Part shown: positions 1,072-7,000 of the stretch, in pieces | Position numbering within the stretch: the first letter of the stretch is position 1 | Layout of the letters: each line of letters starts with the position of its first letter | Source: Saccostrea cucullata | Taxonomy: Eukaryota | DNA: 64,000 bases | Reading direction: 5' to 3' | Assembly (NCBI RefSeq): GCF_032062105.1 | Contig: NW_026925206.1 | Coordinates: forward strand, 62,001 to 126,000 | Made by a program: the position numbers and the translations under genes | The notes under the pieces: model-generated | What the model saw: only the letters and a program-made list of their open reading frames with translations | Databases searched by the model: none | Told to the model about the DNA's origin: nothing

Positions 1072-4000
1072 ATGTTACTAAATTTGCTGACTTTCTTCGT
1101 AATAATTCATGGTAAGAAACATACCTCATTGTGTGTTATTTTGTTTTGTTACTTTTTTGAAAATTGCATACGATAAAACCCAAAATGATAACCCAATAGT
1201 AATAACTAGGCCTAAAACCAGTAGGCCTAGCCTTCTGAATATCGAAAATTTTTATTTGTTTGTGTTTTGTTCAAGAAACCCCTATTTTCACTGCATTTGT
1301 TTTGTTATAAATTAGACCTATTGTTCTATTTCTTAATAAATAAGGTTTATGTTCGAACACATGCACATGTTCTGTAATAATTACAATAAAAAATTAAATG
1401 AATTAGACAGTATCCTCCCTCTATTCTCTAAATAGAAATTATATGGAGAGGCATATGGATTTAAGCTTTTGATACATGTGCACTTCTCTAAAGAGAAATC
1501 TGGTCCTCCATGTACTTTTGGAATAGGGAATGTCCTCTCAAAATTATGTTGTACATACCACAAAGCTTGACAGCTAGTATGTACCTAAAATCAATAATTT
1601 TATTCTCCCCTCCCCATCTCTCTTCTTCAGGCTCATTTTGTAGTTCTGTTTTGAGAAGAAAATATTAGATGCATCGGTGTAGCCTGATGATCAAAGTCTA
1701 AGCTGATCAATATGATAATTTCTAGAATGATCTGATGTCATTTGAAATGGTGATTTAAACTGTACCATGTTTACAGTAAATAACTGCATTATGCATCTCA
1801 CCAAATTATATGCATATGGTAAAGATACATAATAGTCTTTTGTTGCCCTTGTGTGGCAGTGGTAAGAGTATTTGCTGGAGTTGCGAAGTAAGGAATTGAT
1901 CCTTATGTCACAGGTTCAGATCCCAAAGAAAAAGATCCCTCACTGCTTAATGGCCCTGAGTGCAGAGTATCTGTAGCTATATAAGACAAAATTTGCAGTT
2001 ATCCACTGGCAAATGGTGGCGCTGAACAAATCTCATAAGGGACATTAAACAGTATACAAACAAACAAAACATAATAGTTTTATTCAATGAAGTTGCATTT
2101 CACACAGAGGTCTTTACTTTGCACTTGCATACATGCCAACTTTCCCGATTTAGGCGGGATCCTCCCGATTTTACCCTTTCATCCCGCCTTCCCGATCAGG
2201 AGAGAAAAATTGCCCTAATTTCCCAATTTGTAAAAATTCACCCAAAATTTCCGATTTTATAAGTTTCCCTATACCGCTGAATTTTGTCAATTGGGATAAC
2301 AATATCAGACTTGTTTATTCAATGCACACAGATAAGTTTCATTGTTTATTTAGGTGTTAATCAGCCACAGGAAATCACTTCACGCTTGAACGCATGTCCA
2401 GGTACAGGTAGCTTATAGCTTGGGGCAGTTAATTAGGGGATTGTCTTTTCAGTTAAAAGGGTACGCAAGGTGAAACACATAATAATTGTTAGTCATTTTA
2501 TTGAAAACATAAATTAAAGACAACTAAATAATAACTAGCTGCAGATCTGTAGCGTTATGGTTTTATATATTTGTCTTTGACCATAACGCTACAGATCCCT
2601 TAGTGCAAAAAAGGTGCAATTTACGGCGCAATATTTTTTGCGCACTTTTGGGGAGAATTTCTCCACTTCCTAGCTTTGGTCAATCAACTACCTTTCACTT
2701 TCTAATTCTAGACACATTCTGTAGCCAATATGTATAGTTTATCCACCTCCCAACCATTTATAGTTGCATGTCTCTACAGGCAATAAAGCTGGATATGAAT
2801 TTTCAGATAAATTTAACAAATAATTTTAATCAAGCGAGTTTATCACTTGTAGAGACGACTATAAAGGGTTGGGAGATGGATAAAATATACAGATTAATTA
2901 AATAATGTGTCTAGAATTAGGGGTTGAAAGGTAGTTGATTGAACGATGCTGAAAAGTGGAGAAATTCTCCCCAAAATAGCGCAAAAAATATTGCTCCGTA
3001 AATTGCACCTTTTTTGCACTACGGGATCTGTAGCGTTATGGTCAAAGACAAATATATAAAACCATAACGCTACAGATCTGCAGCTAAATAATAACCAAAC
3101 CATAAAATTGGAATCCAAAGAGATCGTTATTTGAAAACGAAAGTAGAAAACTACAAAGCATAGCTGCTGACTTTATCTACCTATAATTAAAAAATATTGT
3201 AAAGTTTGCCAGTTAAGGTTATCCGATCCTCAGGTTCCGAAAATCAGGCATTAAGTAATTGAAAATGCTCACAAAGACGTCTCTAAATTCTCAAATTAAA
3301 ATGTATTTACCCACGGTGTTTCTTTAAATTTCATCTTTAAATTTAATCATATTATATAGGGAAAATTAGTAAATCTCAAATATTTTTTTCAGGAAATGCG
3401 ATTTGAACTACCTACTGCATATTTTTTAATTGATAATTGATCAAGAAATACATTTTAGGAATATAAATCATAGGTATCCAGGCTTTTAAAGAAAATTGCA
3501 TGAATTTTACACTTATTTAGTACTTTACTTTCTCTTTCTTACTTCCATCGTTTCATAATGCATAGTGTATGAAGTGTTTCCTTTCAAAGAAAACACCGTA
3601 AATCACTTCTAATTTCAAATCATGCTTATAAACATTGGTAACTAAGGCTAAATTAAAAGAAATTTGATTTCTTTAAAATATGCAAGGTTTATTTAATGTT
3701 ATGAGGTACAAAAGTCAAATTTTTTTTATACCGTTTGTTAAAACTTTAAAGAGCATTGAATCATACGTAGAGGCATAAAATGAAAATTGTTGCATAAAAA
3801 AATTTCAATTTCAAGCTTTATTTAAAGACTTTTTGAATTAAATTATAAATTTAGGAGTTATCCTTCCTGGCTGAGGATCGTATATCCTTAAAATAACATG
3901 AAAAAAATCCTGATGAAATAATAAAGTCTGTGTCAATTAGAATTTCTTTTCCCTCCCTTCTCCCAAAAGTAATTAATATTGTATGCATAAGTGACTACGA

Positions 4001-7000
4001 AATACCCACATAGCACCATCAAGCCTGCCAAAGTTTGACTGTAAAAAAAATAATTTTCCCAGGATAGGTGGTATCTTTGTGTTAGAAAATTGATGATTTA
4101 ATTCTTCAAACCTGATGGTTTATTTCTTTGAATTGTTTTGTGTGTGACATAAAATTAAGTGTTTTAATGATATGTAACAGGAAAGGAGAAAATGCATGGC
4201 TGGACCGGGAATCGAACCTGGGACCCCTGTATCTCTAGTCAGGTGCTCTACCAACTGAGCTGTCCAGGCCGATATCCACGGCCCAAACCATTACATTCCT
4301 CCCTCCTTAAATGGTCTTCGTCCTCGAAGACACAACCCAAGTTCTTATTGCCCCTGGCAGGACTTTCACCTGCAATTCCAGGGGTGGTCAACGACACCAA
4401 ATCTGTAACAGGGAAGGAGAAAATGCATGGCTGGACCGGGAATCGAACCTGGGACCCCTGTATCTCTAGTCAGGTGCTCTACCAACTGAGCTATCCAGGC
4501 CGATATCCACAACCCAAACCATTACATTCCTCCCTCCTTAAACAGTCTTCGACCTCGAAGACACAAGTTGTAGGGCCCTGTCAGGAATTACTAATTTACA
4601 CATACACTGTAACCTGAACAAGGCACCAAATGTAATGGGAGAGGAGAAAATGCAGCGGACCAGACCGGGATTCGAACCCGGGCCCCCTGAAACTCCAGTC
4701 AGGTGCTCTACCAACTGAGCTATCTGGCCAACAGGTTCGAATCCCGGTCTGGTCCGCTGCATTTTCTCCTCTTCCGTTACATTTGGTGCCGTGCCATGCC
4801 CTGGAATTGACAGGTGAAAGACCTGACAGGGATTCTGGGTTGGGGTCTTTGGAGGGCCAAAGACCTTTAAGGAGGGAGGAATGTGGCGGTCAGCCGGGTT
4901 CGATCGCCGGTGGCCAGATAGCTCAGTTGGTAGAGCACCTGACCGGAGTTTCAGGGGGCCCGGGTTCGGATCCCGGTCTGGTCCGCTGCATTTTCTCCTC
5001 TCCCATTACAGATAAATGTACATACCATGAGGAACAAACTTTCTCATCTCCCACACAAAAAAATAAATGCATTGCAATTTCTCAAAATTTCTTTAAATTT
5101 AATATCTGATTAGAATTTCTAATTAATTAAAATATAAAAATCTCAAAAATGTTCCCAGAAACAGTACTTTACGTATCAAAAGTTGTACAATTTTCAATTT
5201 TTCATCAATTGAAATTATGTGTCTTAGCTTGTAAAAAAAAAGTTTACATATGTAACTAAATATCCCTTCTTTAGTGAGAGAGGCACCTATTTGAGCAAAA
5301 AATATTTCAATTTTGGAAAGAAAAACCTTATTTTTGTGTTATTTTTATCTTTTAGTAGTATTAATAAGTGATATTGATTATATTATAAATTTTAAAAAAA
5401 GGACCATGTCATAATCATTTAATTTCACGACAAAATGTTGCGAATTTAAAGCTATGAAAAATGTCGTCACGCGCAAAATCCCCCATGGGAATTTTCAAAA
5501 GTTGGCATGTATGCACTTGTCACTGCATAATTGTAACAGGTGAGCAGAAATACAAAGAATCAGGATTTGAACCCGCTCCCCCCTTGAATCTTCAGTCAGG
5601 TGCCCTTCCCACTTAGCTATCTGGCCACTGGCCATCAAACCTGTCTGAGACACAGACCATTACATTATGATATGAAGCTTTCAGGAAAAGTACACTTATA
5701 TGGATGGACAGAGAGGAATACTTGGAAGGGAATGTTTACTGTTGTAGTTTTACAATGGGAATATTGATGTTAAAGCAATGGTGTTCTTATTGTATACTTA
5801 TAACTTGAAAAACAGATCTGTTTAAATTTTAGAAAAAACAATGCCTCGATCTTTCTATACTTATATTGTTTCAGTTTTCCAATACACACTATAATTTACT
5901 TGACACATTGATTTCTTGCTTAGTATCAATTGTTTGTACGTATTTTAATAATAAACAAAAAGTTCATTAATCATACCAGTAAATGATCATTATTGGGCAT
6001 GGTTACAGAGTGATCAAGATGTGTCAGAGTTTTTTTTCCCCCTCTAACCCCATGACACACGAGGGTAGTGGCGGGATGCACATTACCTGGGTGCATAATT
6101 GATTAATTAACAGTAGCATGCTTCTGAGTTACTTTATGATGTTCATGTTTAAAGGAGATAATCATTGGCAAATCTCTTAGGATTATTTGGTTGATGCATT
6201 TTTCATAAGGAGATCTAGTCATGGACCCCTAAAGGAAAAAAAATGTTACAGCAAAGCCTTTTGATTAAATTGATGAATTGTAGAACTGAGGAAAATTACT
6301 CTCAAAGGAATTCAGACAGATCCATCTTTAAAGAAAGAAAAATTCATACATATATATCTCATTTTTCAAATGTGTATATATTATGTTCATTATCATGGTT
6401 ACATTAACGATATAGTATTGATCTTTACATTTGAAAGAGGAGATAAAGAGAAAATAAGAAAGGGAGATAATTAAGAGAGAGGGGGATAATAATGATTGAA
6501 ATGAATTCATGTCCCGAGGTATAAAATAACGAGGAAGTATTCATTATCCTGAGCTTGCTCAAGTGACTAAACAGCATTTCTCAGTAATCATGAATGTCTT
6601 TTTTTCTAATCAAAAGTCAGTAAAGATGTGAAATACAATACCACATAGCAAAATTTTAAATTAAAATCATTGATGAAGATAATGCAATGTTAATTGAGAA
6701 GGACACTCCTCCTTAAAATTGTTTGGTTTACCCAATCAGATCTAGATCACTTGATCAATCATTGTGTAAACTTTAGAAAAGAAATAGAATAGAAATAATC
6801 ATGTGATAAAAGAATGTGACTATTACTATTATCATTCATGTTAATTAAATTTTCATGACTCTTTAAATAATTCCATTCTTTCTGAATATGCTCCATTTAA
6901 GAGCTGAAGTGTGATGATGCTAATAATCAGCTAAATCAATATGTCTCTCTGTCTCTTCCTTCAGTGACACTGAGCCTATTGACATTGAGGGGCCCATATA

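Follow-up and report, generated by a model that had tools for sequence, protein, structure and literature searches.

Helenus elements are TRIMs that carry a tRNA-derived sequence in their LTRs (Kojima, 2024, Biology 13:119, PMC10886601). The supplement of this paper lists, from the host Saccostrea glomerata, Helenus-1_SaGl (LTR 129 bp, internal region 103 bp, total 361 bp, TSD 4 bp), Helenus-2_SaGl (123, 108, and 354 bp, respectively) and Helenus-5_SaGl. Neither the mobilising autonomous element nor the start of the template RNA of a Pol III-type TRIM was established in that study, in which helpers were proposed by PBS similarity (Gypsy-39_CGi for tRNA-His; PMC10886601). The plant TRIM Cassandra (Kalendar et al., 2008, as summarised in PMC10886601) is similar to Helenus in having a small-RNA gene, a Pol III promoter and a terminator in each LTR and in forming tandem arrays, but its unit is 5S and not tRNA-like, its hosts are plants, and 5-bp TSDs have been reported (PMC10886601). 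While Cassandra has been reported to be transcribed from its small-RNA unit (PMC10886601), Pol III transcription of Helenus is inferred only, both here and in PMC10886601. The tRNA-derived SINEs (SINE2) resemble Helenus in that a tRNA-like head contains the A and B boxes, and in being short non-coding sequences of high abundance that annotation is likely to mistake for tRNAs, but they are devoid of LTRs, PBS, and PPT, and have A-rich or LINE-derived tails and variable TSDs. Finally, complex LTR-retrotransposon insertions with three LTRs and flanking TSDs were ascribed to template switching in the particle, a multi-unit block within a single TSD being regarded as a single integration that followed when two co-packaged RNAs were reverse-transcribed abnormally (Sabot and Schulman, 2007; PMC1950507).

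The 838-bp block at 4173-5010 of the window (the whole 64-kb stretch of DNA that was analysed) is a single insertion built from several Helenus copies. We are highly confident that it consists of members of Helenus-1, -2, and -5, non-coding TRIMs probably moved by Gypsy machinery and putatively copied from a Pol III template, and that its parts form a head-to-head mosaic, which would have existed before insertion. The family is not new, having already been published, very probably from the species of the window, to judge by the match with the consensus; the head-to-head mosaic is absent from PMC10886601, in which tandem arrays are mentioned for one fish family only.

Layout of the block and identity of its parts

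The first-pass annotation of this DNA had read the region as miniature LTR elements, with LTRs (TGT..ACA) of about 125 bp each enclosing a tRNA-like cloverleaf with A and B boxes, separated by about 100 bp with a PBS after one LTR and a PPT abutting the next, and without coding capacity. The elements are indeed there. The block contains five LTR pieces, which are 123-129 bp long where whole and end in TGT..ACA, and four of which carry tRNA-like units with Rfam scores of 41-62 bits; the LTR-to-LTR spacers are 100-108 bp, and the ORFs crossing the block gave no match in a Pfam search. They do not form a simple row: three minus-strand units meet a 5'-truncated plus-strand element head to head, with the junction at about 4733/4734, and three families (Helenus-1, Helenus-2, and a Helenus-5-like one) are mixed. 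The outer ends on both sides are LTR 3' (U5) ends, flanked by the two copies of a GATA target-site duplication, of which the left (4169-4172) lies directly before 4173 and the right is at 5011-5014.

The left half, on the minus strand, starts from its outer U5 end with a 123-bp Helenus-2 LTR (4173-4295; TGTAA..TTACA; tRNA-like unit at 4197-4269, T4 at 4189-4192), followed by a 108-bp Helenus-2 internal region (4296-4403) running from the PBS (gatttggtgtcg..) to the PPT (..aaggagggaggaa), and a second 123-bp Helenus-2 LTR (4404-4526; TGTAA..TTACA; tRNA-like unit at 4428-4500). The next part is a 104-bp Helenus-5-like internal region (4527-4630), compared with Helenus-5_SaGl-I and Fig. S2C of PMC10886601, whose tRNA-Ile-type PBS is shortened to TTTGGTGCC by a deletion of ~14 nt. 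The inner end of this half is a truncated Helenus-1 LTR without U3 (4631-4733, LTR positions ~28-129), which ends no more than 3 nt from the 5' end of its tRNA-like unit (4657-4729). The right half, on the plus strand, begins at its inner end with the 3' part of a Helenus-1 LTR (4734-4781, LTR positions ~77/82-129). Together with 4631-4733 this piece forms an imperfect palindrome, and the Rfam matches to mir-4776, mir-877, and the like at 4637-4774, all below the gathering score, are an artefact of it. A 100-bp Helenus-1 internal region follows (4782-4881), with the PBS TGGTGCCGTG at 4784-4793, 2 nt past the LTR end, and the PPT AAGGAGGGAGGAA at 4869-4881, adjoining the complete 129-bp Helenus-1 LTR (4882-5010; TGTGG..TTACA) that makes up the outer U5 end. 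This last LTR has an A box (TAGCTCAGTTGG) at 4919-4930 and a B box (GGTTCGGATCC) at 4963-4973 within its tRNA-like unit (4912-4984), and T4 at 4991-4994.

The assignment of these elements to Helenus-type TRIMs in the first-pass annotation is supported: the units agree with the published consensus sequences of Helenus-1, -2, and -5 (Kojima, 2024) almost letter for letter, as judged by eye against the supplement text and not by a computed alignment. By this comparison, the units of the window differ from the Helenus-1 and Helenus-2_SaGl entries at 2-4 positions per part: 4/123 in the LTR at 4173-4295, 2/108 in the internal region at 4296-4403, and 2/129 in the LTR at 4882-5010; the Helenus-1 spacer at 4782-4881 has a deletion of 3 nt besides two substitutions. 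RNA reads labelled with the same species show the consensus letter wherever the window copy deviates from it. Part by part, the likeness to the three published families extends to the LTR lengths (129 and 123 bp; published internal regions of 103 and 108 bp), the PBS (tRNA-His; tRNA-Ile in Helenus-5), the PPT (..AAGGAGGGAGGAA) and the 4-bp TSD, and there is no difference at the family level. What sets the local copy apart is its arrangement, a rearranged head-to-head mosaic with truncated inner LTRs and a deleted Helenus-5-like PBS.

Copies, target sites, and primer

In the genome of the window itself, a first look yielded 1,487 candidates for Helenus-1 and 1,866 for Helenus-2; the copy number is in the hundreds to thousands, far beyond chance. 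The site sample comprised 26 independent Helenus-1-bearing sites, 16 of which are simple 361-bp LTR-internal-LTR copies; simple copies measure 354-361 bp. Perfect 4-bp TSDs flank all 26 sites, where chance would give one at ~0.006 per site at 33% GC. The LTRs within a copy are 88-100% identical to each other, and the pairs that are fully identical, in 3 of the 16 simple copies, indicate recent activity. Mobilisation by LTR (Gypsy-like) machinery, as supposed in the first-pass annotation, is well supported by the LTR-PBS-PPT-LTR layout together with these TSDs. The features named there as speaking against it, namely loss of the TG..CA termini, of the PBS/PPT adjacency or of the 4-bp TSDs, and SINE-like tails, are all absent from the copies.

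The tRNA-His PBS proposed at the same time was found as well. Fig. S2 of PMC10886601 is our source for the complementarity of the PBS to tRNA-His. At 56 exact sites the Helenus-1 LTR end is followed by the imperfect PBS that belongs to the element itself, and at 14 by a perfect 17-nt complement of tRNA-His; this copy of the tRNA-His 3' end reaches 18 nt in the loci L010 and L022. Because there are 14 such sites, some of them in arrays with a period of 226-228 bp, a Helenus-1 subfamily with a perfect tRNA-His PBS evidently exists.

An alternative reading takes the units as SINE2 (tRNA-derived SINEs) that a LINE has mobilised and that have come together by chance, with LTR, PBS, and PPT over-interpreted; the tRNA-like heads, with their A and B boxes, and the shortness and abundance of the units favour it. 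The structure of the copies and their TSDs refute it, and we give it next to no credence: the units end in TG..CA and the copies in ..TTACA with no A-rich or simple-repeat tail, the tRNA-like part is present twice, on either side of a PBS/PPT spacer, perfect 17-18-nt tRNA-His copies adjoin the LTR, and the TSDs are uniformly 4 bp at 26/26 sites, whereas LINE-driven insertion leaves variable ones. Still more improbable, virtually to the point of dismissal, is that the units are genuine tRNA genes or clustered tRNA pseudogenes. The four tRNA-like units (4197-4269, 4428-4500, and 4657-4729 on the minus strand; 4912-4984 on the plus strand) do exceed the gathering score of the Rfam tRNA model (40.7-62.2 against 29 bits), but ARAGORN did not call the unit at 4197-4269 and gave no isotype to the other three, each being reported as tRNA-??? 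with a 4-base 'anticodon' in an 8-nt loop. Judging from this loop, the tRNA-like units are not decoding tRNAs. They also lie inside longer repeats with fixed flanks at >1,000 candidate places, and most Helenus tRNA-like units fail isotype checks (PMC10886601). Because the four Rfam tRNA matches in the 64-kb window are all Helenus LTRs, the tRNA and SINE annotation of oyster genomes is inflated unless Helenus TRIMs are masked.

Pol III signals and RNA reads

Among the 32 LTRs of the 16 simple Helenus-1 copies, the A box (LTR position 38) is intact in 29, as is the B box (LTR position 82). Every one of the 32 contains exactly one run of T4 or longer, at position 110-113, and none was found elsewhere in the element in these 16 copies. 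This run lies only 6 nt past the tRNA-like unit, a location that should end much of any Pol III transcription ahead of the PBS. In the Helenus-1 U3 there is a T-arm-like copy in direct orientation, whose score was reached by 2 of 2,000 shuffles; the idea that U3 is an inverted copy of the element's own 3' part was discarded, the reverse-complement alignment not being significant (250 of 2,000 shuffles reach its score).

The RNA reads compared over 4050-5150 came from three raw-read runs (oligo-dT) and one contig run (random-primed). The Helenus elements are covered 10-50x, equally in both read directions, and the own flanks of the locus are silent in these reads. In the oligo-dT runs, 70-79% of the reads continue into the flanks of other loci, and no pile-up of read starts or ends was seen within the elements; the Helenus sequence in these reads looks like passive Pol II read-through from other loci.

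Head-to-head composites and a candidate helper

Four other head-to-head composites have perfect TSDs of their own, namely C20375 (tacc), C10704 (catc), C2442 (ccta), and C4640 (ttta), and with the window locus they make up the five loci on which our model of the composites is based. Their flanks are unrelated to one another and to those of the window block. C10704 has a second copy, C7174, which is 98.3% identical and lies on a separately assembled contig. The genome has only two places with the exact junction type of the window block, and in two composites a U3-less LTR ends ≤3 nt from the 5' end of the tRNA-like unit. Scans of the genome with Helenus-1 patterns gave no match for face-to-face units (LTR-PBS joined to PBS-LTR) and none for U5 abutting U5, while blocks with two outward U3 ends were found neither in the site sample nor in two such scans. 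Both flanks of the window block are repeats themselves. Three paralogues of these repeats lack the block and are 90-96% identical, with a 13-14-nt difference at the site; 13 nt stand where the window has the 838-bp block and an extra copy of the 4-bp duplication. Although these paralogues demonstrate that the block was inserted, they do not count as real empty alleles and do not by themselves prove the TSD.

In C4640, Helenus-1 is joined to a truncated tRNA-Lys-primed Ty3/Gypsy element, exactly after a 17-nt copy of tRNA-His, and both lie within a single TTTA duplication. The view that the perfect tRNA-His PBS of C4640 is a unique copy of the primer was weakened by the 14 sites that have such a PBS, but the position of the breakpoint directly after it holds despite them. 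The Gypsy element of C4640 is of the oyster Gypsy-125_CGi type (Fig. S2C, PMC10886601), with the tRNA-Lys PBS TGGCGCCCAACGT. Like Helenus-1, it has 4-bp TSDs, and the last nine bases of the LTR (CCCGTTACA) are common to both; unlike Helenus-1, its family is autonomous, with a gag-like ORF and RT-RNaseH-integrase, has LTRs of ~980 bp without a tRNA-like unit, and is primed by tRNA-Lys instead of tRNA-His. The sharing of one TTTA duplication suggests that this Gypsy family is a candidate helper of Helenus-1.

In the mechanism that we propose, Pol III would make the Helenus template RNA from the tRNA-like promoter, starting at about LTR position 28-31, reading through the T4 of the 5' LTR (position 110-113) and stopping at that of the 3' LTR, which would give an R of ~85 nt and an RNA of ~320 nt. 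The reverse transcriptase of an autonomous Ty3/Gypsy element would copy this RNA with tRNA-His as primer, and the integrase of such an element would insert the product. Before integration, two cDNAs in one particle, reverse-transcribed incompletely so that the 3' LTR was finished and the 5' LTR was not, would have given rise to the mosaic in the window; the unfinished ends would have been joined together, and the integrase would have inserted the joined cDNAs through the two finished U5 ends, giving a normal 4-bp TSD. The layout suggests a joint integration of two unfinished cDNAs, which seems to be undescribed, and an ability of the integrase of an LTR retrotransposon to pair, in vivo, two U5 ends that belong to different cDNAs. 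The direct arrays and Helenus-1/-2 chimeras in our sample (L009, L010, L017, L022, and L030) fit the complexes of Sabot and Schulman (PMC1950507), but those are only direct (head-to-tail) with normal U3 and U5 outer ends, whereas the window block is inverted with two U5 outer ends; a literature search found no description of such an inverted block.

Two steps of this scheme have competitors. The template may be a Pol II transcript, from host read-through or an unrecognised LTR promoter, with the tRNA-like unit kept for another role, such as a packaging or strand-transfer structure, an insulator, or a binding site for Pol III factors. The T4 6 nt past the unit in every LTR, which would stop Pol III at ~85 nt, and the poly(A)-selected libraries, with Helenus in both read directions and mostly with foreign flanks, make us allow this a minority chance of some weight. 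Read-through transcripts, however, do not have the terminal R repeats that strand transfer requires; the copies conserve both boxes, A and B, together with one T4 per LTR, and have no other T4; the U3-less LTRs of two composites end where Pol III would be expected to start; and in Cassandra, which has 5S in the analogous place, transcription from this unit is reported (summarised in PMC10886601). The block itself could have arisen after integration, if nested or adjacent independent insertions later underwent deletion, inversion or ectopic recombination, or it could be an assembly artefact, with GATA/GATA a coincidence. While Helenus copies are abundant and recombine, palindromes are prone to rearrangement, and the exact junction of the window is found at only two genomic places, we regard this as rather improbable: all five head-to-head blocks are spanned by perfect 4-bp TSDs (~0.006 each by chance) amid unrelated flanks, an inversion or deletion cannot convert a U3 end into a U5 end with the TSD preserved, neither two-outward-U3 blocks nor U5-to-U5 abutments turned up in the sample and the two Helenus-1 pattern scans, and two contigs that were assembled separately share one composite at 98.3% identity. 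That the head-to-head blocks are fossils of non-canonical integration of two joined cDNAs via two U5 ends is a proposal whose chances we judge to be evenly balanced.

If the joined-cDNA reading is true, C4640 would physically mark the tRNA-Lys Gypsy family as the helper of Helenus-1, or at least as its particle-mate, though their primer tRNAs differ (tRNA-Lys vs. tRNA-His). The inner breakpoints would be the natural ends of reverse-transcription intermediates (PPT, PBS, and the end of the tRNA-primer copy), and the U3-less LTRs of two blocks would put the 5' end of the template RNA ≤3 nt from the tRNA-like unit, which in Helenus would be the first support at the sequence level for initiation by Pol III. 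The face-to-face build hints at how Helenus is copied and at the larger element that may mobilise it. While the Helenus family itself is of practical importance only, the head-to-head observation could matter more; TSD-flanked blocks of this kind would offer a purely genomic route to the mobilising element and to the start of the template RNA.

Apart from the composite, the window has a degenerate solo LTR of 133 bp on the minus strand (5532-5664; TGTAATGG..CTGTTACA), which belongs to an older Helenus-like family. It gave no match in an Rfam search, its flanks (taat/ttat) agree at 3 of 4 positions, and it is 79% identical to the Helenus-1 LTR.

Published Helenus elements and their genomic copies

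Reading of the sequence at window 3600-5700, together with repeat analysis, resolved five LTR pieces within 4173-5010. Three are on the minus strand: complete 123-bp LTRs at 4173-4295 and 4404-4526, and, at 4631-4733, an LTR from which the first ~27 bases are missing. The plus strand has a 48-bp 3' LTR piece (4734-4781) and a complete LTR of 129 bp (4882-5010). The LTR termini are TGT (5') and ACA (3'). The spacers between LTRs measure 100-108 bp, each opening with (ga)tttggtg.. 2-4 bases past an LTR end and closing with aaggagggaggaa, which directly adjoins the next LTR. Rfam tRNA models matched four LTRs at 40.7-62.2 bits (gathering score 29), the sole above-threshold Rfam hits in the entire 64-kb window, and ARAGORN called three of these four units, with a 4-base anticodon and no isotype. 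An A box (TAGCTCAGTTGG) is found at 4919-4930 and a B box (GGTTCGGATCC) at 4963-4973, and the ORFs crossing the block had no Pfam match. Every structural detail in the first-pass annotation of this block (LTRs, A and B boxes, spacers with PBS and PPT, no coding capacity) is therefore present.

TRIMs with tRNA-derived sequence in their LTRs, a PBS and a PPT have been named Helenus (Kojima, 2024; PMC10886601). Their TSDs in animals are 4 bp, their listed hosts include bivalves of five pteriomorph orders, and the supplementary FASTA holds Helenus-1_SaGl, Helenus-2_SaGl, and Helenus-5_SaGl, all from Saccostrea glomerata (PMC10886601). Compared with these entries by eye, 4882-5010 differs from the Helenus-1 LTR at 2 of 129 positions, 4782-4881 from the Helenus-1 internal sequence by two substitutions and a 3-nt deletion, 4173-4295 from the Helenus-2 LTR at 4 of 123 positions, and 4296-4403 from the Helenus-2 internal sequence at 2 of 108, while 4527-4630 corresponds to the Helenus-5 internal sequence with a ~14-nt deletion within its tRNA-Ile-type PBS. 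The lengths and TSD that we measured agree with the published LTR, internal, and total lengths (129/103/361 for Helenus-1, 123/108/354 for Helenus-2) and TSD of 4 (PMC10886601). Wherever the window copy deviates, RNA reads with the same species label carry the published consensus letter, including a GAG insertion at 4833, so that the genome is probably that of S. glomerata or of a species very near to it. Because the elements in the window belong to an already published family, the observation as originally stated is ordinary.

In the genome that contains the window (1.17 Gb), a search returned first-look candidates for both units, 1,487 for Helenus-1 and 1,866 for Helenus-2. Thirty excised Helenus-1 loci represented 26 independent sites, comprising simple LTR-internal-LTR copies of 347-365 bp (16 sites), same-family three-LTR tandems (two), direct Helenus-1/Helenus-2 chimeras (three), and head-to-head blocks (five). 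A perfect 4-bp TSD flanks all 26, where the chance of a match is ~0.006 per site at 33% GC, and no examined copy ends in a SINE-type tail. The TG..CA ends, PBS and PPT, TSDs, and lack of SINE-type tails thus favor the LTR reading, and these copies, along with the definition in PMC10886601, support the earlier interpretation of an element moved by LTR machinery. In the 16 simple copies the LTR pairs are 88-100% identical, three of them fully so, which indicates recent activity.

The direct chimeras (loci L009, L017, and L010), each within one perfect 4-bp TSD and exemplified by a Helenus-2 5' LTR followed by a Helenus-1 spacer and Helenus-1 3' LTR, suggest between-family exchange in reverse transcription. 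A degenerate solo LTR of 133 bp (TGTAATGG..CTGTTACA) from an older Helenus-like family lies on the minus strand at window 5532-5664; it shares 79% identity with the Helenus-1 LTR, its flanks (taat/ttat) agree at three of four positions, and its decayed tRNA-like unit has neither an Rfam hit nor a T4 run.

Head-to-head blocks and their proposed origin

The left half of the composite, on the minus strand, consists in element sense of a Helenus-1 LTR without U3, a Helenus-5-like spacer, a Helenus-2 LTR, a Helenus-2 spacer, and a second Helenus-2 LTR, and the right half, on the plus strand, of the 48-bp Helenus-1 LTR piece, a Helenus-1 spacer, and a Helenus-1 LTR. Because the halves abut head to head at about 4733/4734, the block terminates on either side in an LTR 3' (U5) end, and GATA is duplicated around the whole (4169-4172 and 5011-5014). 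The repeat into which it is inserted (window 3888-4171 and 5013-5202) has at least three paralogues at 90-96% identity (L049-L051, on contigs C13041, C22662, and C19103), and these carry 13 nt (taagcttgcattg) in place of the 838-bp block and the extra copy of the 4-bp duplication. Both flanks of the composite are abundant repeats: 3650-3892 (unit of ~243 bp, 1,833 first-look candidates, 92-98% identity) and 5058-5513 (~455 bp, 352 candidates, 89-95%). Rfam microRNA-precursor models also gave sub-threshold matches at window 4637-4774 on both strands (mir-4776, with 55.7 bits where the gathering score is 97, mir-877, and others); they stem from the ~100-nt palindrome at the junction and do not represent miRNA genes.

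The same architecture recurs at four further sites with unrelated flanks, each with its own perfect TSD: C20375 (tacc), C10704 (catc; a second contig, C7174, carries the same block at 98.3% identity), C2442 (ccta), and C4640 (ttta). The two halves sometimes come from different families. The inner ends are incomplete 5' parts in every case, with LTRs starting at about position 28, 36, 71-77, 85, or 98, or a spacer cut at the PBS, and the right half at C10704 starts exactly at the PPT. Blocks with two outward U3 ends were absent from the 26 sampled sites, and pattern scans returned no Helenus-1 LTR-PBS/PBS-LTR or U5/U5 abutments.

Such a block could arise if two cDNAs with finished 3' LTRs and unfinished 5' LTRs were joined at their incomplete ends, whether through template switching during reverse transcription or through end joining by the host, and if integrase then inserted the joined molecule via its two U5 ends. 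Inversion, deletion, or nesting after integration cannot leave a U5 terminus on each side of a block inside a single TSD; we favor joined cDNAs. TSD-bearing three-LTR complexes have been attributed to template switching between co-packaged RNAs (Sabot and Schulman, 2007; PMC1950507), but those are direct, whereas the block in the window is inverted with two U5 ends. The literature searched contained no account of an inverted form with two U5 ends, and the TSD-flanked head-to-head architecture may be new. Read jointly, the blocks might be informative on integration through two U5 ends, on the helper, and on the RNA start; we regard this reading as about evenly poised between right and wrong.

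Primer and candidate helper of Helenus-1

The PBS of Helenus-1 itself matches tRNA-His (as printed in Fig. S2 of PMC10886601) over only ten contiguous bases. Genome-wide, there are 56 exact sites at which the Helenus-1 LTR end runs into this imperfect PBS and 14 at which it runs into 17 nt perfectly complementary to the tRNA-His 3' end, in units whose spacer is 9 nt shorter. The three-LTR arrays L010 (C7616) and L022 (C20201) have a perfect 18-nt copy in the first unit and the imperfect PBS in the second. In retroviruses, plus-strand strong-stop synthesis swaps an imperfect PBS for a copy of the primer, and the perfect copies are accordingly good evidence that tRNA-His serves as the Helenus-1 primer. 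Two perfect-PBS units in succession at 226-228-bp spacing on C414 and C14870 indicate that a heritable perfect-PBS subfamily also exists.

The C4640 composite (L031, block 2239-4906) has an inverted Helenus-1 element as its left half. Its right half starts with a Helenus-1 LTR (36-129) and a perfect copy of 17 nt of tRNA-His; after four additional bases comes a Ty3/Gypsy element from its C-terminal integrase region onward, through its PPT to its own ~980-bp LTR. This Gypsy LTR ends in ..CCCGTTACA, and the next four bases, TTTA, also stand immediately before the opposite Helenus-1 end. Two native members of the Gypsy family, L044 (C11247:15500-25499) and L045 (C276:18500-28499, minus strand), have a tRNA-Lys PBS (TGGCGCCCAACGT), a G-rich PPT, the 4-bp TSD cagg, and LTRs running from TGTAGTAG to CCCGTTACA, with a nine-base 3' terminus identical to that of Helenus-1. 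The family is about 8.8-9.5 kb long, with ~980-bp LTRs 91-96.5% identical within a copy, and includes eight or more copies that are 90-95% identical. One native copy retains two long frames, a 428-aa gag-like ORF and a 1,437-aa pol ORF whose RT, RNase H, and integrase domains follow the Ty3/Gypsy order; the pol of the other is broken into several frames. At C4640, an end of Helenus-1 and an end of the Gypsy family were apparently inserted in a single integration event. This makes the family a candidate helper or, at the minimum, a particle-mate, although a single locus is suggestive only. It differs in its tRNA-Lys PBS from the tRNA-His Gypsy suggested as helper from PBS similarity (Kojima, 2024; PMC10886601).

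The putative Pol III template

Of the 32 LTRs in the simple copies, 29 retain an intact A box and 29 an intact B box. Runs of T4 or longer occur exactly once in every LTR, at LTR position 110-113 and 6 nt downstream of the tRNA-like unit, and nowhere else in these elements. The U3-less inner LTR, both in the window and at C20375, stops at most 3 nt from the 5' end of the tRNA-like unit. Because of these features, the elements are consistent with a putative Pol III template that would start at the tRNA-like unit, read through the first T4, and end at the second. The main argument against it is that T4 should end most transcripts after about 85 nt. An analogous scheme, with a 5S unit in place of the tRNA-like unit, is reported for Cassandra, as summarized in PMC10886601, and Kojima (2024; PMC10886601) presents Pol III transcription of Helenus as an unproven inference.

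The available RNA data, three raw-read runs primed with oligo-dT and a random-primed contig set, show nothing beyond read-through originating at many loci: the two read directions covered Helenus elements equally, 70-79% of reads continued into foreign flanks, no starts or ends were preferred, and the composite's own flanks were silent.

A second T-arm/B-box-like motif, in direct orientation (CCGGGTTCGATCGCCGGT), lies in the Helenus-1 LTR U3 at window 4894-4911, immediately upstream of the tRNA-like unit; its alignment score was reached by only 2 of 2,000 shuffles, and it may be the remnant of an upstream tRNA half.
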